From positions 215,925 through 247,924 of the forward strand of contig NW_008806291.1 in the NCBI RefSeq assembly GCF_000400465.1: a stretch of DNA of 32,000 nucleotides. The letters run 5' to 3'. The number at the start of each line of letters is the position of its first letter. Position 1 is the stretch's first letter. The DNA comes from Wallemia ichthyophaga EXF-994. Taxonomy: Eukaryota > Fungi > Basidiomycota. Under the pieces are notes generated by a model. The model did no database searches. It was not told the origin of the DNA and was given only the letters and a program-made list of their open reading frames with translations. A program made the translations under genes and the position numbers. This document shows, piece after piece, positions 3,823 to 18,196 of the stretch.

Positions 3823-6157
3823 CTACTTCTTCTCAATCGCCCTATCGACGTTGAAGCAGGCTGAGATAAGAGAAACCGCACTAAAGCCCTGCGGATAATT
3901 ACCCAGGGCCTGTCCGCCCTTGCCAATCTCCTCACTCAACAACCCCAGATTGCTAGTATACCCCAGAAAGTCCTCGAGCATAACGACAGACTGAGACAGC
4001 AGCTTTTTGTCGTATGCACCAGCGCGACATAGTGCCTCACACGCCCACAACGTGCATAGCCCAAACGCTCCTTCCTCACCCCCAATTCCGTCATTCGCTT
4101 TCGTTACGTCGTAGCGCGATACGAGGTTGTTTGAAGTAAGCCCACCCTTTTCAGGTGATAATAAAACGTGCTTGAGTGTGGATAGCAGACGCGGGTCGGT
4201 GGGCGCGATGAAGAAGGTGAGGGGCATGATCAAGATGGAGCTGTCTAGCACATCTCTATTCTCGTAGCTCTGCGTAGTGAATTATTGAGAGGGCTTTCTA
4301 ATCCAATCTTTAAACATACCTGCGAAAAGAAACCTAACTGCTTATTGTACCCCTTCTCTTGGATTTCCTCATAAATGTTGTCTCTATTTTCGAGCCACTT
4401 GAGGCGATTGGGGCAAGGTAGGCATCTCTTGTCTGCAAGGCGCAGTCCGCGGTCGATAGCCACCCAGCACATGACCTGTGAGAGTAGTGAATTGTGTGAG
4501 TATGTTAAAATGTTCTGCAGTTTGCAAAATAACGCTTTTTCGCAAGTCGCATTTTGCAACTCAAACATTTGTAACATAACATACCTTGGAATACTAGTCT
4601 ATGTCAGCCAAATAATTCTGAAACACCCCACTCACCAAGAAATTCTGCTTCTGAGATCTAACCTCCCAAATAGAAAGATCTGGCTGATTCCATGCGTCGC
4701 AAACATAATCAACAAGCTTGCGCATGCCTACCCAGCAATCGTACGATAGCGGGTTAGCGTGTTTCTGAGCAAGATAGACGGCATCAAGGACAGCGCCGTA
4801 GACGTCGAGCTGGAGGTGGTCTGCTGCACCATTTCCAATTCTCACCGGCTTCTGTCCCCTGTGACCAGCTAGGTGGGGCAGCTCAATCTCTGGCATCTCA
4901 CGCTGACCATGGATGGTGTAGACGATCTGCAGACTACCGTCGCTATTTGGGTGCTCGAGCAGGGAAGCTATCCAGTCAACATACGCATTTGCCTCTTCTT
5001 TGAAACCGAGCCTGACGAGGGCGTAGACGGTGAAGGACGAATCTCTAAGCCAAGCATAGCGATAGTCCCAGTTCCGTCCCGCTCCGTGTAAGTCTTCAGG
5101 CAGGGAGAATGTCGGTGCGGCAATCACGGCACCTGTAGGTGCAAAAGTGAGCAATTTGAGCGAGAGTGCTGAGCGCAGCACTTGCTCGCGCCACCGCCCC
5201 TTGTACTGCATCTTGGCCGACCACTGGAGCCAGTACTGCGTTGTGGATTCGAGGAGGTGTTCTGTAGAAGCGAAGGTGGGGGATGTACTATTATCCTCTC
5301 TTTCCGACAAGACTAAAGTAACCACTTGGCCTTCGGAGAGTGAAAATTTTATACATACTGCATCGCCGAGGAAGCCGCGCTCAGCTGCATTGTGCGATGT
5401 TAATGATACCGCTGGATCTGATACCGCATCTGGTGCGCCGACAGTACAGCGCAAATCGAGATTGATGTGGTCAGGGCAGTCGAAGTAGGCCGTGTTGCTA
5501 CCGCTATCGACGCGCACGCTGTGCCCCGAACGTGCATAGTTGAATGCAGGAGCACATTCGCTGACAAACGACATTGTCCCGCGGAGACACTCGACGCGTC
5601 GAACGAGATGTGTGGGGCTGCTGAGGGGCATGAAATCTACCAGTGTGTGAGTATGTGAGTGTACACCTCTGTTCCTATCTCAGGCACGCACCGTCTACGT
5701 TAGCAACGGCTGTACCTGAATCAGATTGACATGCTTGATACGCTCCAACTCACCGTCGTCAGCCAGGAACTTTGTATTGAGGATGTTGGTCGATGGGAGA
5801 TACATCTGCTTGTTTACAGTGGCTGTTTGTGGGTCAATACTCCAATGACCGCCCCTGCAGTGAAAATTTTAGCCCAAATTATCAGCGTGAGAAGACCCGT
5901 CTGTTCACAAGACTTACTTCTTCACATCAACAATGCGCGCAAAGATACTGTGGTGTGTTAACGCTGCTTTTATTTATCAGATATTCACCTGAGCCAACTC
6001 ACCTAGGGGAATCGAAATAAGGCATCGAGAGCTGAGCAGTGGTACAGTTCGACGACACTAAAGCCGCAGTCATGCAATTACCTATCACGCCATGTTCTTC
6101 AATATCCGTTTCACGCTCGTGGAAGCTTAGTTTGCTATTGGATGTTTGAAGAACCAT
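3823..6157 (-). CDS. Glycoside hydrolase family 15 protein (trehalase/glucoamylase-like, with trehalase-type N-terminal domain)
   Basis: Exons 6157-6003, 5947-5918, 5854-5754, 5715-5692 (or 5694-5692), 5636-4636, 4593-4585, 4475-4320 and 4269-3823; about 640 aa. Motifs IEEHGVIGNCMTAALV, PYFDSPSIFARI, AAPTFSLPE, RNWDYRYAWLRDSSFT, HLQLDVYG, IWEVR, YSKVMCWVAIDRG, EGAFGLCTLW, LLSEEI and GNYPQGFS. Confidence 0.94.
4500..4584 (-). other. Imperfect inverted repeat (long hairpin) inside GH15 intron 4476-4584
   Basis: Complementary blocks: 4500-4507 with 4577-4584 (8 bp), 4508-4514 with 4564-4570 (7 bp) and 4522-4530 with 4551-4559 (9 bp); 20-nt loop at 4531-4550. Confidence 0.8.
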
Positions 6158-6339: not shown

Positions 6340-7509
6340 CTATAAAGAATGCGGCGAGTGAGCACTAGGACGTCGTTCGCTGCTAGTAGAGGGGCTCAAA
6401 ATACCCAGACCGACGCTGTCGCTAGGGCTAGGATTAGACCCCAAGAGGCTGAAGTTGGTGTCGACGGAGAGATTCATTGGCCTTTGGCTGTGTGCCTGCG
6501 GGGTGTAGTGCGATGAGCCCAGCGATAGCGGCGATAGTGGCTGTTCCATTCTAAACCCGCCACCATACTCGGACGCATACGGCGACGAATGCGTGCTGTA
6601 GAGATCGGGTATGGGCGAGCCTGCGCTGGATGGACTTGGCGAGTAGGGATACGGAGGGATAGTGGAGTTAGCCGCGTTTGTAGCGTGTGTTGAGGTGTCT
6701 GGCGAAGTGACGAATATCGGTGGCTGGGCGGGTGGTGTGGGTTTAAGGGGAAAATGGCTATTGGTGTTACCTCCGGTGGTGGCGTTGGTGTGAGCACCAC
6801 TGCCAGTGTCCATACCATCACCACCTCCACCACTGCCACTCCAGGGGTAGTCAAACGGCAAGCCACCATGCGTACCGTAGAGAAAGGCGTAAAGCTGCTT
6901 AACGACATCCTTCAGACACTGCGTCTCGCCCCGCGAATGCTCCAGCTGCTGCTCTAGAAAGAGTACACGCTGGTTGAGGGTGGCTATGGACTGGTTGGAC
7001 TGCGACTGGCTAAGCTGGAGGAGGGCGACGGAGGAAGGGAGGTCTGTGCTACGTGCTGCGGTGCTTGTAGACGTACTGGCCTCTGCGCCGTCGAGTACCT
7101 TTCTTTTGATGTCTTCGAGCAGGTCCTTGCGCCCTCTGAGGAAGTTGGGGTGGGAGAACTCCCACACTTGGTGCTCTGGGTGTGCCTTTTGCCCGCGTGG
7201 CGTCTTGTTGCACTTATGGAAGCCATACATATTCAGCTGCCTGACAAAGGAACTGAAATTGGAGTGCTTGAAATGGGTAGGCAAGATTTCCGAAGAGAAG
7301 AGAGAGAGATTGGCAACTATAAAACTATCGCCAGCCAGATTCCACGAGATTAGATTGTTGGTGTTGGCGTCGACCATCTCGTACAGCTTCGGGACGAAAG
7401 ACGAGCTAGCGCCCTGCTTTGATTTCTTGGAAGCGTGCGGCGACTCATCATCGGATAGCACCGAATTATCCCTTTTTATCTCATTTTTGTTCGGCTGCAG
7501 GAGGTCCAT
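6340..7509 (-). CDS. HSF-type DNA-binding transcription factor (no receiver domain; Sfl1/Hms2-like rather than Skn7)
   Basis: First in-frame ATG at 7509; 389 aa. HSF domain FVPKLYEMV...ISW...F...LPTHFKHSNFSSFVRQLNMYGFHK...WEFSHPNFLRGRKDLLEDIKRK, then a coiled coil and an S/P-rich tail. Confidence 0.93.
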   Translation of the reverse strand: MDLLQPNKNEIKRDNSVLSDDESPHASKKSKQGASSSFVPKLYEMVDANTNNLISWNLAGDSFIVANLSLFSSEILPTHFKHSNFSSFVRQLNMYGFHKCNKTPRGQKAHPEHQVWEFSHPNFLRGRKDLLEDIKRKVLDGAEASTSTSTAARSTDLPSSVALLQLSQSQSNQSIATLNQRVLFLEQQLEHSRGETQCLKDVVKQLYAFLYGTHGGLPFDYPWSGSGGGGDGMDTGSGAHTNATTGGNTNSHFPLKPTPPAQPPIFVTSPDTSTHATNAANSTIPPYPYSPSPSSAGSPIPDLYSTHSSPYASEYGGGFRMEQPLSPLSLGSSHYTPQAHSQRPMNLSVDTNFSLLGSNPSPSDSVGLGILSPSTSSERRPSAHSPHSL

Positions 7510-7549
7510 GGTGGTTGGAGTAGCGAGAGTAACGCGAATAACTCGATTA

Positions 7550-7945
7550 ATGGATTTGCGGACGTGAGCGGGAGTTGAAGCGCGGGTCACACGATAACAA
7601 ACGTAACACAGCCTAGATGAGCATGTCCTAAATTATCTCAATAGGCGGGGATACTCGCAGACCGTTGAACTGCTAAAGTTGGAGGCGGGGCTCGTGGTAA
7701 ATGCCGACGATAATTTTCTATCAGAGTGGTTCCAGGTGCTAAACGAGTGCAAGCAGAGCGAGGACTTTTCAAACCACTCCACCCAAGCCAAAACCAACCA
7801 ACTCCAAGATTCGTATCAGTTGCTCGCCATCGAGCAGAGGAAATTGCACAAAACACAGTCAATTGAGCAGGATAAACTCAAGACAATAGCCAGCAGATCA
7901 TCATCCACTAATATCCCCAACCCGCACAATTTTTCAAGCGAGTGA
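7550..7945 (+). CDS. Small LisH/LUFS-like protein (~115 aa)
   Basis: Exon 7550-7563, 48-nt intron (GTGAGC...GTAAC..CAG), exon 7612-7945. Product: MDLRTLDEHVLNYLNRRGYSQTVELLKLEAGLVVNADDNFLSEWFQVL... A LisH motif is followed by FLxEW, as in Flo8/SSDP LUFS domains. Confidence 0.7.
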
Positions 7946-8399
7946 GTTGCTATTATGAGGTTTCACGGTGCGCATGTATTCTATACACTTTTGTTCTTTG
8001 TGCTTGTACTCTATGCATGGTATTTGGCCCGTATGTGATGCTCTCACGATGAAGACAATTTCTCGTGCGCCGTTCCATGCCGTCCAACGAACGTGCATCC
8101 CCCCATTGAACGTGCGCTATTAGACACTCAATTAATGCACATGATTATGGCATCAACTGAAATTCTACGCCAACTAGTGAAAGTAAATAAGTGTACTCTG
8201 CCCTCTACGTTCCTCCATTGCCAAATGCGATTCGATGGCTAGTCTGTCTTTGTTTCTCAGACAGAAAAGCTTAAAGTTCAGCTTAGTATTTGACTTATTA
8301 TTCAAACGTGTTTAAATGTTGATTTTCAACACTTGTAGATTTTGAGCAGAAATTGTGACATTCGAGGGCTTGTTTGGGTATACTCTTGCGGCTCAAGTA

Positions 8400-9901
8400 T
8401 TCTTTGAGATGGTACAAATTTCCTTAAGTTGAGCACTGCATCTCATTCGGTATTTTCACAGCTGTTCAGATTTGCAGATCGAAAATCCATTCGGTGCTGC
8501 TCTAAACAATCAGATTATCTCACAATATCAATCACGCATATTCCCACGCGTAATATCATATCCCATACAATAAGAATTGTTTCAATCAAGCAAGCATTAT
8601 TATTGAGACATTCAGAAGCACTACTCTCCCTCTTCGTCTCGAAAAGTCTCGAGCTTCCTCGAAGCTTTTTCAAGAGTGTCAAAGAAGTTAAAGAAAGACA
8701 TTCATGCATTCGATCTTGTTGGCAGCTATTTTTTGGAGCATTGGGTGGGTTTGAATAAACCTAGACAAAGCAATATCATCGACAAGATTATCTTCATTAG
8801 CCAAATTCAGCTCTTCAAGCTTGGTCATTATAAATTAAAGCAGCCTTCTTTAAAATTTTTGTAGAATTCAGAGGTGATTTGGTTTTTGACACTGAGAATT
8901 TTCACGTTTGAAAGCTTCGCATCTCTCGTGAGATTCATCATCTCATTACCTGCAGTGAGCAATGGCTCTCTCATGTCAATCTTGTGGAATTTCACTGACA
9001 GTCTCGCCCATCCTGAAATTTCACCTCCAGAAATGCAATTTAACTGCGTCAAATCTGGCAAAGAACGGTTATTGAGAGCTTTTCCAATCTTATTTGTTTT
9101 GATAGAATATAAATTAAGCATCTCGCAAGGCAAATAAAGCTTCGGACGGTTTGTTTCAGTTCCTGAGACCAGTGAATCGTCGTAAGTAACTTCAAGCGCA
9201 GTGAGATTAGGCATTAGCTTGAGTAGAAGCTGAGCGCTTCCTAACGAATGAAAATTTCTATTGCTGTGTTTTGAGCAGGGTCTTTTTAGTCTGATGAATT
9301 GGGAATTTTGGTTTCTGAATGTTTCAAGAGACTTCGCAAGTATACTCATGTCCATCAGAGTATCGCGTAGGTCTTCGCTGTAAGTTTCTGGCATGATTTG
9401 CTGCGATTCAGCTAATAAGATAAGTTTCCTGCATTTGAGATTTCTTGATATCTTGAGGTTCGAAGTCTTCCCTGATGCATCTGTATCTTCCAGAGTAAAG
9501 CGAAAATTGTAGACAAACAAAGTGGACAAACCATCTTCGTCTTCGCATAGCATTCCATAACAGTTTTTTCTAGCCATGAGTGCCAAATGACCGACTATCA
9601 GGGCATTCCTCTCAGGTGCCGACAGCGAAGCCTTGAGCTTTCTTACCTCAAAACTCCTGTCAATGAACCAGGAAGACGACGAGTAGACTTATCCAGATAC
9701 TTAGCATCTACATTGAAAGATTTTAATGTAATACTTGCCGTGATAATGAAGCATGGCTGCCCTCCAGCGCCGGTTAATCAATGACAGATACTAGATAGTC
9801 ATGACAGAGAATGTTTCAGGGCTATCCTGGACAATGAGATCGGATATTGATTGAATTAGCTCTGAGAAAAAATTGGAAGCGTTCAATTTGATAGTTGACA
9901 T
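8400..9901 (-). pseudogene. Decayed F-box/leucine-rich-repeat-like gene
   Basis: ATG at 9901: MSTIKLNASNFFSELIQSISDLIV...*YLSLINRRWRAAM (F-box-like end, in-frame TAG). Frameshifted pieces follow, including the 252-aa ORF 8828-9586 (LLLKLMPNLTALEV, SLPDLTQLNC) and MTKLEELNLANEDNLVDDIALSRFIQTHPMLQKI (RNI/LRR-like). The 3' end is approximate. Confidence 0.65.
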
Positions 9902-10055
9902 AAGATTGAATTGGTGCGAGAGTGTGAGAGTGTGAGAACGTGGAAGTACGTAAGTAGAAGTGCGAGTAAATGAGATTATCAACCGGTAAATATGGTCTGC
10001 TATACTTTAAATGACATACTTGTAATAATCACGCGTGCGCAAAATTCACCTCCAA

Positions 10056-12273
10056 TTATTGAAACATACCAGGCAATGAAGCAATCAATCCAATTACAGT
10101 ATGATGATACCTATCAAAAAATAACTGCGATCTGAGATTACCATCGTAATAAAGTGGTAGAGGACAGAGTTCATGATGCGTTGATTGTTTTTCACTTGGA
10201 TATTTTGTCATTTTCAAGATTTTCCGTTGGCCTACGATATCTCGCCAATGGTTGGCGGGCTTGGTTGAATCTGGTAAGCTGTCAATAGAATTCACTGAGT
10301 CTTTGTCGATCTAGTTGTGAGACGACTGAATGATTTGTCAAAGGTCCTTTCAAGGGGAACATGTGAAATTGACTTTGATGCGGTTCATTGCCTAAGAAAT
10401 GGATGAAGTCTGGTTGAAATTTGTAGAAAAAGAAAGATGCCCATGTCCCTGATTTGCAAATTACTATCGTAGTCAAATCATTTTCATGGCGAATACATTC
10501 TGATGAACTTCTTATAAAAATATTTTGCTTTAAACCGTTTCCCCGATTTATTATTCTCTTTTGCATAATCAACCTCTTTGATATGTGTGTTGATGAGGTG
10601 TAGATATTTAGAAAGGAGTCTACCAAAAGCTCCCTTCAAAGTTCCTTTATATGTTTTGATACGACGTTCAAAAGGAGAGAAAAGAAGTCGTCAAAGAAGC
10701 ATATTTCATTCTTTTTGATGAATTTAGATAGCCTGAAATCTCTAATTCTGAGTGACAGCAGATTCTGAAGCTTACGTAGCCTGCCGGGAACGTCATGGCC
10801 AACATATAGAACTGATTGGACACTCCTAAGCCATAGGCTTATAAAGGAAACTTATCGATAGCGTAGGATTTTTTTCCCCAGCTATAATTAAAGTTGTCTT
10901 GATCCTTGATTTGTGGCTTTGTAGTGATCTGCTTCGTGAACCGTCCAAATTAATCTTTGTTTTATCAGCGCTCAAATCCTTGAGGTTGCTTGTTCCACCT
11001 AGTGATTCTAACACGCCTGAATAAGAGCATATCAAGCCAGCTGGACTAAGAAGAGACGAGTGTTTTGTAGGTGGCGTCTCAAAATCCGCTTGTTATTTTC
11101 GGCCTTGAAAGTCTACGGTAAATACGAGATTTTCAAGCTTCTTTAATAGGGCTGGATTTGGTATGTTGATGTGCCTAATGTCATGAGGAGATGCATAAAT
11201 GTTCATAACATTAGAAAATGTGAGATAAAATGTGCTAAATAATGAAAGGGGCAGCTATTCGGTCTTTGGGTGTGGTTGAATCGGTGGCATATCATGATTG
11301 AAATCCTTGAATTATGGTAATCGGCTGATGGAAAGTTGAGACATCGAAGCAAGCAACAATATCACTTCATCTCGCTCAGCTACTTGGTAATTACAGATAT
11401 TTCAAACGACAATATCTCGCGAATGATTGACCATTCCAGTCAGTGGCACATTGTGCACGTCGTTAAAATTTGGCCAACTGAATACACCAATAAATGATTT
11501 CTGTGCATTGTTGAGCTCGATTATCATTGCTCTAATATCTGCTTCATTAAATGTTGGCTCCAACCATTTCCTGAGTCTAATGCAATCTCTTCCATTTTTG
11601 CAGACTGGTCCTTAGCTATAGATAATGTGCTTAATTCCTCTAAACCTAAGTACTTTATTATCGCGTATTTATTTGTTGATTCCATGGATGGAAATAAAAC
11701 CTCCCGGTCATCAAATCTTGTAGATATCCTGGAAACATCGAGATTAACCAGGTTCTTAAATTCCTTGACTTTTTCACGTAGCCCACCTTCTTCAACATTA
11801 ACAACAGAGGATGAATGATACTCTATAAGAAAACTCGGCGTAAATGATCTCTTTTAAAAACCTGTTTGTTAAGCAGGGCTTGAACCATCTCAGACAGTTG
11901 CTCTAAAATCTCAACGTGCTGGAATATTGACATAGTCGCCTTCTAGTCCCTAATTCTCAAGTGAATCAGTAACGATGGCAGCTTCACACTCCCTCCTATG
12001 TATCCAAATTGAGTTTTCACAATCCTCTTCAGTACGCTCGTGGTCAGTAAGATCACCTTTGAACGCTCCCGTTCCTTCTTTCTCTAAGATTCCCTAAGTA
12101 AGACTCCTAATCTGAGTCTTCCTCAAACTGAATATGTGGCTCGTACTCTGATTTAGAGTTATGGTCAGACTCATTGTTAATACAGGCTATTGCTCCAAAT
12201 CTTCTGGCTCTGTATCTGATTCCAGACTTTAAGTCTTGTTTTCAGGTGTCATCTCAATGATTTTGCGTTTCAT
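10056..12273 (-). pseudogene. Second decayed gene: acidic N-terminus, then possible F-box-like and LRR-like fragments
   Basis: ATG at 12273 gives MKRKIIEMTPENKT*SLESDTEPEDLEQ* (stops at 12231 and 12189). Protein-like fragments in shifting frames: SIFQHVEILEQLSEMVQALL, KEFKNLVNLDVSRI, ALLKKLENLVF and LRKLQNLLSLRIRDF. The 3' boundary is approximate. Confidence 0.55.
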
Positions 12274-13218
12274 AGTGGTCTGCAATTTAGCTTATAGGCG
12301 TGCCGGAAAAAAGCCAAAGAGTAGGAAAAGGATGAGAAAAGAAAAAGGAAATTGGGCTTGGTCGCATTGGTCGCAAATAATGGCTGCCTGTCACATGAAC
12401 GCAATATCTAAAACCCACTTAACGCGCACCTACACGAACTTTAGAGAATGCTCTCACCGATGACACGGCTAGGTCAAATTCCACGCAAGATACTGGTCAG
12501 ATATATCCGCGGCTGTACGAAAACGTCCAGTAGAATCGCGGCCAAAGTGCGTAGTATGCGATTGATATAGACGAATACGGAACATAATAAGAGTGGCGAC
12601 TACATATACACTCTTACGCCAGCAGGTTGAAACATGATAAGCCGATTTTTGGCAAATTTTCAACTGATTTCTGCTGCTACGCTCCTCCTACCAAGTACTT
12701 TGCCTCAATCGATGATCAAATGGCAAATAATTATAGAAGCAGACTGACTATACACAACGACTGGTCATTTCCTACATGTTCAATCACAAACATTAACCGT
12801 ACTTGTGGATCCAAGGCGTCAATTGAGCAGTAACGTCAATTTACAAACTAGCGAATCAACATTAGTCAAACACTTCAGAAGCAGTGACTTTACACGATTC
12901 TGACTTTCCCAGTCGACGTTGTGATGGCGAATTTAGGCACTTTCATCTTTTGCAGAGACTTAATATTGGTCCAGGTGTTGACGCTGTTTTTAGTGCTGAT
13001 TTATTTACTTTGACTTAATCTCTCAAATTCATTACTCAAAGTGATTATCATCGTTCATTTATGTTTAATAGGTATGATGCATATCTACTAATCCTTTTGT
13101 ATGCTGTCTTCATTAAGCTTAATACATGACAATTTACTTACACCAGTATATTTAGAAAAAACTGTAAATCATTCATAAGAAACTAACAAGAAATCCAGTG
13201 ATAAGACCACTCGTGCAT

Positions 13219-13654
13219 CTATTGAGAGAGTTCAGCAGCCTTCTTGACGAATCCTTGAAGCTGTGAGTGTTGTGAGAAAGGAACGAGAAAGAAATGAGAA
13301 GAAAAGGTCACCGACCATTGGAGGAGCAGCACCGCTAAACGAGTCCTTCTTTTCACCGTCTTTGAACAGGTAGAAAGTAGGCATAGATCTGATGGACAAG
13401 TGTTCGGCTATGTCGCCAGCTTCATCAACATCAAAAGATGCAAACTGGACCCCAGGTGTGGACTCAGCGAGTTTCTTAAATACAGGAGCAACGAGCTTGC
13501 ATGGCGCGCACCCGCATTCGCGTTTTAGCTCAATTCGGTGTGATTTTGGGCCAACTTACCAATCTGCCTCCGCTTTGATGACCGTTGGCTGGTTTGAGCC
13601 AACAAACTCCATGAATTGGTTTAATGAGCCAAGGTGGACTACTGGATCGGACAT
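13219..13654 (-). CDS. Thioredoxin (WCAPC active site); intron 1 acceptor is non-canonical
   Basis: Exons 13654-13560, 13511-13316 and 13260-13219; 110 aa. Product: ...VIKAEADWCAPCKLVAPVFKKLAE...FDVDEAGDIAEHLSIRSMPTFYLFKDGEK... Intron 1 ends in CGG instead of CAG. Confidence 0.88.
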
Positions 13655-14235
13655 GGTTGATTAATCTGCGATGGTTTGGGTTCAAGCCGTGATAAAAGAG
13701 TCAGATCACGTAATCGCAGGATAAAAAATAGACTTAAAGTGAGTGTGAGCTTTTAATTTCTACAAATCTGCTAATATAGATAAGATGGATTGATTGAAAG
13801 CGTGGTTTCATCGTCATCTGCAGTTTCGAGAGAGTTGGAGTGATGATGCAGTTGCAAGTACATCGCATAATGCAGGCGGTTGAGGTGAGATGAGAGCGAT
13901 AAATAAGAGTGCATCTTTCACGGCTCAAGCAGGGCTATGCGTCGAACGTTTTACTTTGACATTACCAGAAGTATTGCATGTCATCCGAGAAGCTGACACA
14001 AAGCGGCGGATATTGAGTGGGTCAATGATTTAGAAGTGTAGTTGGAGCGATTACATGACTTCGAAAGTAAGGGCGCTGTTGTTTTGCCGTTGATCGCGCT
14101 ATGACGTAGATGTGCATCAATAACAGAAATGGATGAGATATTCTCGCTCAAGAGAATTTGTCAAAGATCTGCATAACATGAAGCAAATTTGTATCAATCA
14201 TTAATACTCGTACATTAAATACACTGCGCTTAAAC

Positions 14236-15411
14236 TTAGAGCTTGTTCTCTGAAAGCAAGTCTGTGCAGGCCACCTTGACACGCTCGACGATTGCCTTTT
14301 CACCCTCGCGGACCCCTGCAGAAAAGTTAGATAGGCTCTAAACGGTAATGATATAAACTTGCAAACTCTTGGGTCGAAAACCTTTTTGTTTGGTTTGTCA
14401 GCTTTGTGATGGTTAGTACTTTCGTCTGAAGGGCTATGACCGTGACTAACCTCCTTCTGGGTTACCAACTTGTGTCATAAGGTAGTCCTTCTTGTTGAGA
14501 ATGTAGTCACGGTGACCACAGAGGTAAGCCCATTGGACATCAGTGTCGACGTTCATCTTGACGACACCGTTGACGACAGCAGTCTTAATTTCCTCCTTGC
14601 TGGAGCCGGAGCCACCGTGGAAGACGAGGAAGAGTGGCTTCTCGTGCTTGCTGGAGGATTGCTCACGAGCGTACTTTTGGTGGTCTCCGAGGATCTCAGG
14701 GGTGAGCTTGACGTTGCCTGGCTTGTAAACACCGTGGACATTACCGAAGGCCGCGGCGATAGAGAAGGATGGGGAGATGGCGGAGAGGGCCTGGTGGACC
14801 TTGTAGACCTGCTCTGGCTTGGTCATAAGGCTGGAGGCGTCGGCGGACTCGTTGTTGACACCGTCTTCTTCACCACCGGTGATACCGATCTCCATTTCGA
14901 GCCATTGGCCCATCTTGGCCATGCGGGAGAAGTACTTGACGCAGGTGCTGATGTTCTCCTCGTCAGACTCCTCACTCAAGTCAAGCATGTGGGAGGAGAA
15001 GAGAGGAACGCCGTTGACCTTGTAGTAAGCCTCGTCGGCATCGAGCATGCCGTCGAACCAAGGGAGGAGCTTCTTGGCGCAGTGGTCAGAGTGGAGGATA
15101 ACTGGGACACCGTAGAGAGGGGCGACGGTGCGTACGTGGTGGGCGAGAGCGACCGAGCCGGCGACAGAGGCCTGCTGCTTGTCGTTTGGAAGACCCTTAC
15201 CAGCGAGGAAGGCACCACCGCCGTTGGAAATTTGGAGAATGATTGGGGATTTGATGTCGCGTGCAGCCTCGAGGACAGCGTTGGCGACGGAGGAAGAGGT
15301 AATGTTGACGGCTGGCATGGCGTACTTGTTGGCGCGGGCGTGTTCAAACAACTTGAGGGCATCGACGCCGCTCAAGACGCCTGGTTGTACAACTGAGAGT
15401 GCTCCTGACAT
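14236..15411 (-). CDS. FBA1: Fructose-bisphosphate aldolase class II
   Basis: Exons 15411-14451, 14401-14363 and 14315-14236; 359 aa. Motifs HSDHC, SSHMLDLSEE, EMEIGITGGEEDG, AAFGNVHGVY, VFHGGSGS, KMNVDTD and DPRVWVREGE. Intron 2 is GC-AG. Confidence 0.98.
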
Positions 15412-16754: not shown

Positions 16755-18097
16755 ATGAGCACATCAAGCCTCAGTTCACCAGAATCATCGCGCGGGAGCG
16801 ATAAGATAGTTGTAAATTTCCACGATAAGGGCGCTACCAAGGGATTTAGCGATAGCGGTTCAGAAGCCTCGACTCAACCGCTCAGCAAATCCAGCAGCGA
16901 GCTGTCGGAGCCACCCGAGGATAGAATAAAGGCGGAGGAGGCTGTGCATCCTGCCATCGCCCACGAACCCACTCTCGCTTCCGCTCTCGATCCAATCCCT
17001 TCAAACATTCCGCACGAGCTGGCTATGGATCCCCCGCCTGAAGCTGTCGCAGCGCCTACAACTGAGAAAGAGGTCGGTGCTGGTGAGGCGCTGATTGACA
17101 TGGCGGTGGATGGCGAGGCTGAGGAGGCTGAGCCGGGCGAGAAGGTTGAGGAGCAACTCGAAAAGCAGCAGCTGGACGAGGAGCAAGACCAAGACGAGGA
17201 GCAGCACCCCGCAACAAACCCGCCACCAACCGAACATGAAACACCTCAACCCCCCTCGCCCTCACCCTCACATTCACACTCACATTCGGACGAAAACACA
17301 CATGCACACACTGCCACAACGACGGGCACATCCACAGCATACCACGTCGACGACGAGCGCGAAGATGCCCTCGCCCACCTCACCAAGCTAGAGATAGAAT
17401 TTGCGATGCTGCGCAATAAGCTTTATGTGGAGCGTATGGAAGACGTAGGGCGGGAGAGTGCGATGATCGCAGATGGCACACACCCCGAATTACAGCATCT
17501 ACACACTATACTCGCTCAAAGACGCGATACACGACTCTCTCTCGCCAGCATAAGGTTGAGGAAGCTCGAGGAATCGCACAAAACCACTTTTCGCGCTGAG
17601 CAGACCGCTGCCTGGACTAACTGGGTTGAGGGCGTGAAGCAACTCCACTATGGGCAGGGTGACAAGGTCGAGAGTGGCAGCTATGGTTGGGGTGGTGGGT
17701 TGCAGGGCAACGATAGGAAGAGGAGGAGACTCGAGAGAGAAAAGGAGGCGCTCGAGGTGCCTAAAATCCTTCAACGGCCGCCCATTGCTCACCTCGCCAT
17801 CAAGGCTACTCAACAGCTCGCTTCACTCCCACCCCCTCAATCCACGGCAAGTAAAAACAAAAAACGCGGCAGATACCCGAGGAAAGACCACATCAACCAC
17901 GATAAACAGAAGGTGTCGATGAATAATTGGCACGATCTCAATTCCATGTTCGGTGAGCCGTTGAGTAGTATTGAGGATGTCCAGCTGGCGAGGCAGGCTG
18001 TGGACGAGGATATGATGGCGATGAATGTGGGTGGTGTGCGTGTGGTCGGTGCGCAACTAACCCACAGACAGGATCGACAGCAGGAACTCCACGTTGA
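16755..18097 (+). CDS. Sds3/Dep1-like Sin3-HDAC complex subunit
   Basis: LAHLTKLEIEFAMLRNKLYVERM...IADGTHPEL coiled coil typical of the Sds3 family, after an acidic N-terminus. A probable 41-nt intron at 18027-18067 (GTGGGT...CTAAC..CAG) gives a stop at 18097; unspliced, the stop is at 18152. Confidence 0.85.
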
Positions 18098-18196
18098 AAC
18101 GGAAACAGACCACAGCAGACTAATGCAATCCAGCCATCCGTCGCCGTTGTAATGTAACGAAATATATGTGATATTAGTACCCCTTGCACCTCGACA

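Follow-up and report, generated by a model that had tools for sequence, protein, structure and literature searches.

A 32,000-nt stretch of the genome of the basidiomycete Wallemia ichthyophaga EXF-994 (NCBI RefSeq assembly GCF_000400465.1, contig NW_008806291.1, positions 215,925 to 247,924 of the forward strand; hereafter the window) contains a small spliced gene that starts head-to-head with the gene for an HSF-type transcription factor, and the locus raises the question of what so small a protein does and whether its position beside a regulator has any bearing on its function. The original prediction, made from the sequence, suggested that the product may be a dominant-negative microProtein that titrates a full-length Flo8/Som1 regulator and forms a two-gene adhesion and morphology switch with an Sfl1-like repressor next door. 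We arrived at a different and tentative answer, to which we assign a probability of roughly 0.4: the gene would encode a miniature LUFS-family protein that is confined to Wallemia, is obligately oligomeric and acts as a small cofactor or adaptor, and its position beside the HSF-type gene would mainly reflect genome compaction.

The small gene occupies positions 7550-7945 of the forward strand and consists of two exons, the spliced translation of which gives a 115-aa product (MDLRTLDEHVLNYLNRRGYSQTVELLKLEAGL...FLSEWFQV...SSE*). It is concealed from a naive list of open reading frames alone, since the NCBI annotation (GCA_000400465.1) already calls a hypothetical 115-aa gene over exactly this span. 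That annotation was made ab initio with GeneMark-ES (PMC3849046), so that the NCBI model counts as no transcript evidence. Searching 5.8 billion proteins yielded a W. hederae orthologue of 114 aa with 62% identity, together with a prokaryote-style fragment of the window's own small gene. By tblastn, unannotated orthologues came to light on a Wallemia-like metagenome scaffold (L007) and in W. mellicola, none of whose three examined assemblies (L004-L006, 4610-4999, minus strand) includes the gene in its annotation. Exon 1 contributes 14 coding nucleotides in each of the four Wallemia-lineage genomes, and a phase-2 intron splits the same codon; the intron measures 48 nt in W. ichthyophaga, 42 nt in W. 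hederae, 48 nt in W. mellicola and 50 nt in L007 (the mean intron length in the W. ichthyophaga genome is 61 bp; PMC3849046). The stop codon falls 1-5 residues past an NP[H/N]x[F/Y] motif in each of the four species, and the proteins are 114-138 aa long. Between orthologues, the proportion of synonymous differences (pS) was 0.73-0.99 and that of nonsynonymous differences (pN) 0.31-0.42; synonymous sites were saturated in five of the six pairs, so that the raw pN and pS alone are meaningful, and the sole computable dN/dS ratio was 0.18. Considering that the exon-intron structure and the stop are shared by four genomes, that pS exceeds pN and that the gene was called independently in the NCBI annotation of W. 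ichthyophaga and in the annotation of W. hederae, these comparisons indicate that the small gene is a genuine spliced protein-coding gene that has long been kept under purifying selection. The coordinates, the NCBI call and the orthologues thus bear out the prediction of a spliced gene of about 115 codons lying 40 nt from the ATG of the HSF-type gene.

The product had also been held to end early, without running on into a multidomain protein, and this view was upheld by the same stop in four species and by the lack of conserved sequence 3′ of it. Since the stop position is constant in the four species, a longer product of the TAF5, LIS1 or WD40 type was rejected, and so was read-on through a donor-like GTGAGT at position 7942, a motif without counterpart in the relatives. 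Nothing downstream of the stop is conserved between species, and in the window the gene is followed by 5.3 kb of AT-rich DNA without a Pfam match. We take the short length to be ancestral, and not the artefact of a missed exon. When 1.84 billion representative proteins were searched exhaustively with HMMER, no relative of the small protein was found outside the Wallemia lineage, and no Wallemia paralogue at E<=1e-3; the matches consisted of Wallemia-lineage fragments, ankyrin noise and a fragment (P0126) with two LisH-like repeats. By these searches, the family is detectable only in the Wallemia lineage. The similarity to ankyrin proteins in PDB and among the representatives (1N0R, DARPins, P0125, P0127) was rejected as a chance match to the consensus GY..(V)ELL.LEAG..VNA.D, with no significant domain E-values.

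The N-terminal half of the protein carries the LisH motif that had been noticed at the outset. Pfam LisH (PF08513) matched three of the four orthologues (best E=5.6e-6), and the window copy fell just below the cut-off of 21.6 bits (E=9e-4, 19.5 bits); Pfam LisH_PAC1 matched weakly in two of the four family members, and the scan of the orthologues matched neither SSDP nor any other family. Consistent with the Pfam results, the structural matches described below were to LisH proteins throughout. The further claim that LisH followed by FLxEW makes up a LUFS module was examined by profile-profile alignment with hhalign, using a LUFS profile to which only sequences verified in a database or in PDB were admitted (SSBPs from animals, four in number, and five LUG/LUH proteins from plants); human SSBP2 1-94, used for comparison, is identical to PDB 8HIB. 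The profile of the four orthologues matched the LUFS profile with 95.3% probability (P=2.4e-8) over 62 columns that comprise the LisH motif, the loop and the alpha3 helix, and the score of 41.6 compares with 9.9±2.1 for the column-shuffled N-terminal half (maximum 17.4 of 200). Taken alone, the LisH part gave P=4e-4 and the FLxEW helix P=6.8e-5, the latter landing on the correct LUFS columns. By contrast, the match to a LIS1/PAC1/NudF profile (of which PAC1 was verified against PDB 9MFY and LIS1 in part) reached 75% probability (P=2.5e-5) and covered 33 columns, all within LisH; as a control, the LIS1/PAC1 profile matched the LUFS profile with 11.5% probability. Because the LUFS match extends over both LisH and alpha3, lies above the shuffles and is better than that to LIS1, the N-terminal half is supported as a divergent LUFS-like module, and the claim stands as one of distant relationship.

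The alpha3-like segment agrees with this assignment at several positions. F40, L41, E43, W44 and F45 are invariant in the small-protein family. In fly SSDP, F58 lines the NPFxD pocket and V65 lies at the centre of the alpha3 interface (PMC6800368); F58 maps to the invariant F40, V65 to V/I47, F66 to L/L/L/Y48 and L69 to C/Y/Y/L51. The second half of the alpha3 signature is lost, the family having L-N-E-[C/Y]-K in place of FWD[IL][FY].

Against all PDB sequences, the family profile gave weak matches only, namely the bMERB domain of EHBP1 (E=0.036), the LIS1 N-terminal domain (0.27) and the LisH motif of TAF5 (0.29), and membership of each of these families was rejected. The bMERB resemblance (MICAL3, E=0.58-5.5) concerns positions 7715-7870, residues about 40-90, where EWFxVLNE...SYxLLAxEQR falls on the long bMERB helix with its EWFxLVN...YELLxxELR-like patterns; no orthologue has a Pfam bMERB domain and no bMERB structure appeared among the Foldseek matches, and the similarity is probably one of helix composition. 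The TAF5 match is a single 28-residue LisH alignment to the Komagataella phaffii protein, and Pfam found neither NTD2 nor WD40. For LIS1/PAC1, there is no WD40 domain or further exon, and the similarity is confined to LisH.

AlphaFold2, run on the four-sequence alignment, predicted two short LisH helices (residues 3-12 and 15-25 in exon-2 numbering), a loop and one continuous 64-residue helix, with a mean predicted local distance difference test (pLDDT) score of 85 and values of 93-97 over residues 61-90 in the same numbering. When the model was compared with PDB structures by Foldseek, all 42 matches were LisH proteins. The top match was the N-terminal domain of LIS1 (probability 0.8, E=0.18), and the SSBP2/SSDP LUFS structures stood lower in the list, with a template modelling (TM) score of about 0.5 normalised to target length. 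This ranking, the weak LisH_PAC1 matches in two family members and the 75% hhalign probability speak for a LisH-coiled-coil dimer of a generic kind that works outside transcription, for example as a LIS1-N-like or FOP/TON1-like cytoskeletal adaptor, in which case the likeness to LUFS would be convergence in the helix packed beneath any LisH bundle. We consider this very unlikely, given that the LIS1 match is limited to LisH, that the P value for LUFS is a thousand-fold better with alpha3 in register, and that no WD40 or other domain follows downstream.

The original prediction let the protein finish with a short helix and a stop after FLSEWFQV. This part of the description has to be revised, as 65 residues follow, among them the best-conserved stretch of the whole product. 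The pattern common to the orthologues reads QLxxSYxxLAxxQRxxH...KLxxxAS, then SSxN[IV]PNP[H/N]x[F/Y]; A98, S99, S102, N105, P107, N108 and P109 are invariant across the four orthologues, and the C-terminal 50 residues are better conserved than LisH. No match to the C-terminal half was found in Pfam, in PDB or among the 1.84 billion representative proteins.

On the cofactor reading that we prefer, the LisH motif would form an obligate dimer, as in all structurally characterised LisH modules, and the long helices would probably pair as they do in the LIS1 N-domain. Through its alpha3 surface the protein would engage a partner, much as SSDP alpha3 binds the LDB/Chip LCCD helix or as fungal Flo8/Som1 operates with Mfg1/PtaB, and the conserved distal helix and tail would recruit or bind something else. 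Since a pure dimerisation cap would not need a conserved C-terminal half, we infer that a cofactor is preferable to a dominant-negative titrator.

Several points weigh against this reading. Plain HMMER links the family to no LUFS protein, either among the PDB sequences, which include SSBP2, or among the 1.84 billion representatives, and a single-sequence hhalign alignment to SSBP2 gave a probability of 5%. Foldseek places LIS1 above SSBP2, and no structural match is statistically significant. Y70 of fly SSDP, which is required with F66 and L69 for tetramers (PMC6800368), is replaced by K/N/R in the small-protein family, and the tryptophan of FWD (human W69) by N or E. The gene model itself is built from sequence, the NCBI call being an ab initio GeneMark-ES prediction. 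Finally, the choice of a cofactor over an inhibitor derives solely from the conservation of the C-terminal half, and a partner of the LDB/PtaB/Mfg1 or Flo8/Som1 type is only hypothetical in Wallemia.

The same observations bear on the microProtein proposal, under which the short protein would titrate a full-length Flo8/Som1 partner. In its favour, hhalign supports a LUFS-like module, and the product is short in four species and has no long low-complexity activation tail. However, the C-terminal 50 residues, for which a pure titrator has no need, are more conserved than LisH, the family is not recognisable as a truncated copy of a larger protein, and no long Wallemia LUFS protein was seen among the 120 matches listed of 480 in a mixed-profile search, no direct scan of the proteome having been made. 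Those 120 matches were fragments of plant LEUNIG or animal SSBP proteins and the W. hederae orthologue. Short LUFS-only entries of 87-175 aa from plants and animals are numerous in the databases (P0128-P0246); the ones inspected were truncated LEUNIG/SSBP models with intron read-through, so that a database match to a short LUFS protein is no evidence of a natural microProtein.

The remaining evidence on this proposal concerns the neighbour. The only Pfam domain in the 389-aa protein was HSF_DNA-bind (E=2.5e-35), and the closest PDB chains to the DNA-binding domain were human HSF4 and HSF1 (95-99 bits), followed by Chaetomium Skn7 (92 bits). Pfam found no receiver domain, which excludes an identity with Skn7; an HSF domain without a receiver is common to Hsf1, Mga1 and many others and does not discriminate in favour of Sfl1. 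P0003 and P0004 are orthologues of this protein. The best relatives outside Wallemia were generic small HSF-type proteins of Mucoromycota, some of them named Hsf1p or HSF4-related, and no homologue named Sfl1 was among the search matches. Assignment to the Sfl1 type, as judged from these matches, is therefore unsupported. The conserved stretch that follows the DNA-binding domain appears to be helical and perhaps coiled-coil-like, and the C-terminal region is rich in Ser and Pro. Near its end, the RRxS[A/T]HS motif fits a protein kinase A-type consensus, which is not specific, and assignment to this kinase would be provisional. Protein kinase A control, known also for yeast Sfl1, is compatible with the conserved RRxS and counts in favour of the microProtein proposal.

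The head-to-head arrangement was found in all four lineages, and the expectation that the pair would be conserved in relatives was thus borne out within Wallemia. The start codons are 40 nt apart in W. ichthyophaga, 39 nt in W. hederae and 141 nt in L007; in W. mellicola, with the ATG that gives the 14-nt exon, they are 1 nt apart, or overlap by 2 nt. The head-to-head position is old within Wallemia. The two genes had been described as co-transcribed, which divergent genes are not; what they have instead is overlapping divergent promoters or 5′ ends. With ATGs 1-40 nt apart, the promoters and 5′ ends must overlap, each transcription start lying inside or at the edge of the other gene, and these overlapping 5′ regions make some co-regulation or interference plausible. 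Heat-shock elements (GAAnnTTC/TTCnnGAA) were absent from the ±500 nt inspected in three of the four species, namely W. ichthyophaga, W. hederae and W. mellicola, and for these autoregulation through such elements was rejected.

The pair had further been called locked, as if its spacing were special, yet unrelated divergent pairs are equally tight. In the window, an EI24-like gene (plus strand, ATG at 1402) and a prefoldin gene (minus strand, ATG at 1357) diverge from a 44-nt spacer, and in W. mellicola the UCH gene and a 60-aa gene are 35 nt apart. The outer neighbours have changed on one flank of the pair in W. ichthyophaga and on the opposite flank in W. hederae, and the pair has stayed intact. 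This persistence is weak evidence for selected linkage, because a spacer of 1-40 nt is a tiny target for breakpoints, synteny is broad, unrelated pairs are equally tight and 73.6% of the W. ichthyophaga genome is coding (PMC3849046). Neither the Ceratobasidium nor the Basidiobolus locus that holds the nearest HSF homologues outside Wallemia has a LisH-like gene beside it. Taken together, we attribute the arrangement mainly to genome compaction and conserved synteny.

These results complete the case for and against the microProtein proposal. The retention of the pair, despite saturated synonymous sites and altered outer neighbours on both flanks, agrees with a two-gene switch. On the other hand, the Sfl1 assignment has no support, unrelated gene pairs nearby are just as tight, the shared region has no heat-shock element, and the nearest non-Wallemia HSF homologues lack a LisH neighbour. 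The combination of Flo8/Som1 titration, an Sfl1-like partner and a two-gene switch is best regarded as a hypothesis. The conservation of the C-terminal module, a spacing that is nothing unusual and the lack of a detectable parent protein weigh mildly against it, and we consider it unlikely.

Two further possibilities were considered. In the first, the small protein would act on its neighbour, its long helix pairing with the coiled coil of the HSF-type protein and modulating oligomerisation, and the linkage would keep the two co-expressed. HSBP1, an unrelated 76-aa protein, modulates the oligomerisation of HSF1 in this way. Adjacency and overlapping 5′ regions conserved in four lineages, as well as a conserved helical segment in both proteins, are consistent with such a partnership, to which we nevertheless give very little credence: no similarity to HSBP1 or to a known HSF partner appeared among the PDB and Pfam matches, and adjacency is accounted for by compaction and general synteny. 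In the second, the protein would be a lineage-specific LUFS mini-subunit that enters a Flo8/Som1-Mfg1/PtaB co-regulator, the counterpart of ChiLS, through LisH and alpha3, with a tail that rewires or blocks the complex; promoter overlap with the HSF-type factor would then join both genes in one stress and morphology switch of an extreme halophile. The tail, N[IV]PNPxx[F/Y], loosely recalls the NPFxD ligands of ChiLS but does not match them, and we regard this scheme as quite unlikely. The positions of the features discussed here are collected in Table 1.

Table 1. Features of the small gene, its HSF-type neighbour and the spacer between them, in window coordinates.
Feature	Position	Strand	Remarks
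Spacer between the divergent start codons	7510..7549		40 nt
Small gene, exon 1	7550..7563	+	ATG and 11 nt; encodes MDLR and two bases of T5; within the NCBI gene span
Small gene, intron	7564..7611	+	48 nt, GT..AG (GTGAGC...ACAG), phase 2
Small gene, exon 2	7612..7945	+	TGA stop at 7943-7945
LisH motif	7613..7687	+	Residues 6-30, LDEHVLNYLNRRGYSQTVELLKLEA; two short helices in the predicted structure
LUFS alpha3-like segment FLSEWFQVLNE	7715..7747	+	Residues 40-50; in register with GFLxxWWxVFWD of SSBP and LEUNIG
Predicted continuous 64-residue helix	7715..7906	+	Residues 40-103; conservation within the protein is highest in the second half
Conserved C-terminal tail ASxxSSxN[IV]PNP[H/N]x[F/Y]	7889..7933	+	From the alignment of four orthologues
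HSF-family transcription factor gene	6340..7509	-	389 aa, single exon; exact protein in NCBI GCA_000400465.1, scaffold KE007241
HSF-type DNA-binding domain	7099..7398	-	Residues 38-137; canonical, uninterrupted
Conserved helical or coiled-coil-like stretch after the DNA-binding domain	6877..7041	-	Residues about 157-211; LPSSVALLQL...KDVVKQLYAFLY; conserved in three orthologues
RRxS[A/T]HS motif near the C-terminus	6355..6375	-	R379, R380 and S382 invariant in three orthologues

Elsewhere in the window, positions 7950-13200 form the 5.3-kb AT-rich stretch that follows the small gene (GC 0.37-0.42, against about 0.50 around it); it contains no NCBI gene, no open reading frame longer than 252 aa and no Pfam match, and may have arisen by insertion, by decay of an element or as the scar of a rearrangement. 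Downstream of the small gene, W. hederae and W. mellicola have genes for a ubiquitin hydrolase and a YEATS protein, in W. mellicola after a 60-aa call. The GH15/trehalase-N gene beside the HSF-type gene (3823-5631 region) is a single 638-aa model in W. ichthyophaga and is represented by two models, of 112 or 128 aa and of 591 aa, in W. mellicola (L004 6272-8906), a split that is probably an annotation inconsistency. On the minus strand at about 13219-15411, an NCBI model of 446 aa has matches to both class-II fructose-bisphosphate aldolase and thioredoxin and represents either an unusual fusion or merged genes. An Sds3-like protein is encoded at 16755-18152.

Large co-regulators oligomerise through LUFS modules at their core; examples are SSDP of the Wnt enhanceosome, LEUNIG of plants and Flo8/Som1, which serves adhesion, development and virulence in fungi. 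The small protein is a new short version of this LisH/LUFS module, which is itself already known. If our reading is correct, a conserved LUFS-like protein that stands alone at 115 residues would offer a compact, natural means of finding out what the module does in isolation, and it could show how LUFS complexes are tuned. If it is just a lineage-specific small protein unconnected with the gene beside it, its interest would be local, that of one more annotated gene. The locus illustrates how regulators are packed start-to-start in an extremely reduced fungal genome, where promoters must overlap coding sequence.

The known systems differ in how far the small protein follows them. Like the LUFS domains of SSDP and SSBP2-4 (PDB 6S9R, 6IWV, 6TYD, 8HIB), it has a LisH-loop-alpha3 order in which F-L-x-x-W-[W/F]-x-[V/I] lies in register with theirs, it retains the equivalents of F58 and V65, and its predicted fold overlaps theirs with a TM score of about 0.5 over roughly 50 residues. 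SSDPs, by contrast, are about 360-390 aa long and have a long disordered tail, whereas the 115-aa protein lacks the FWD[IL][FY] part, continues alpha3 into a long helix and ends in a conserved tail of its own. LEUNIG and LEUNIG_HOMOLOG were the best-scoring real sequences among the matches listed in the mixed-profile search and have in common with the family the signature ...[VI]x[ILV]Dxxxx-FLFEW..., FLFEW being exactly present in the W. mellicola orthologue; LUG/LUH carry Q-rich regions and WD40 repeats, which the small protein does not. With Flo8/Som1/SomA/Mss11 it shares a fungal origin and an N-terminal LisH/LUFS-like module, and the glutamate of FLxEW is the one in the FLYEWW segment of Flo8. 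Regulators of the Flo8/Som1 type are several hundred residues long, with a nuclear localization signal and activation regions (PMC4631450, PMC3228794), and the relation to them is one of resemblance only, the LUFS profile having been built from animal and plant sequences. The long C-terminal region typical of LUFS proteins, be it a disordered tail or WD40 repeats, is absent, as the small protein ends at 114-138 aa in four species. LIS1/PAC1/NudF (N-domain, PDB 1UUJ) likewise has LisH followed by a long helix, but it also has a WD40 propeller, and the similarity ends after LisH. Finally, in being small and built on the oligomerisation module of larger regulators, the protein resembles microProteins such as the plant LITTLE ZIPPER and the animal ID proteins; unlike these, it has an additional and better-conserved helix and tail that make up about half of its length and suggest a function of its own.

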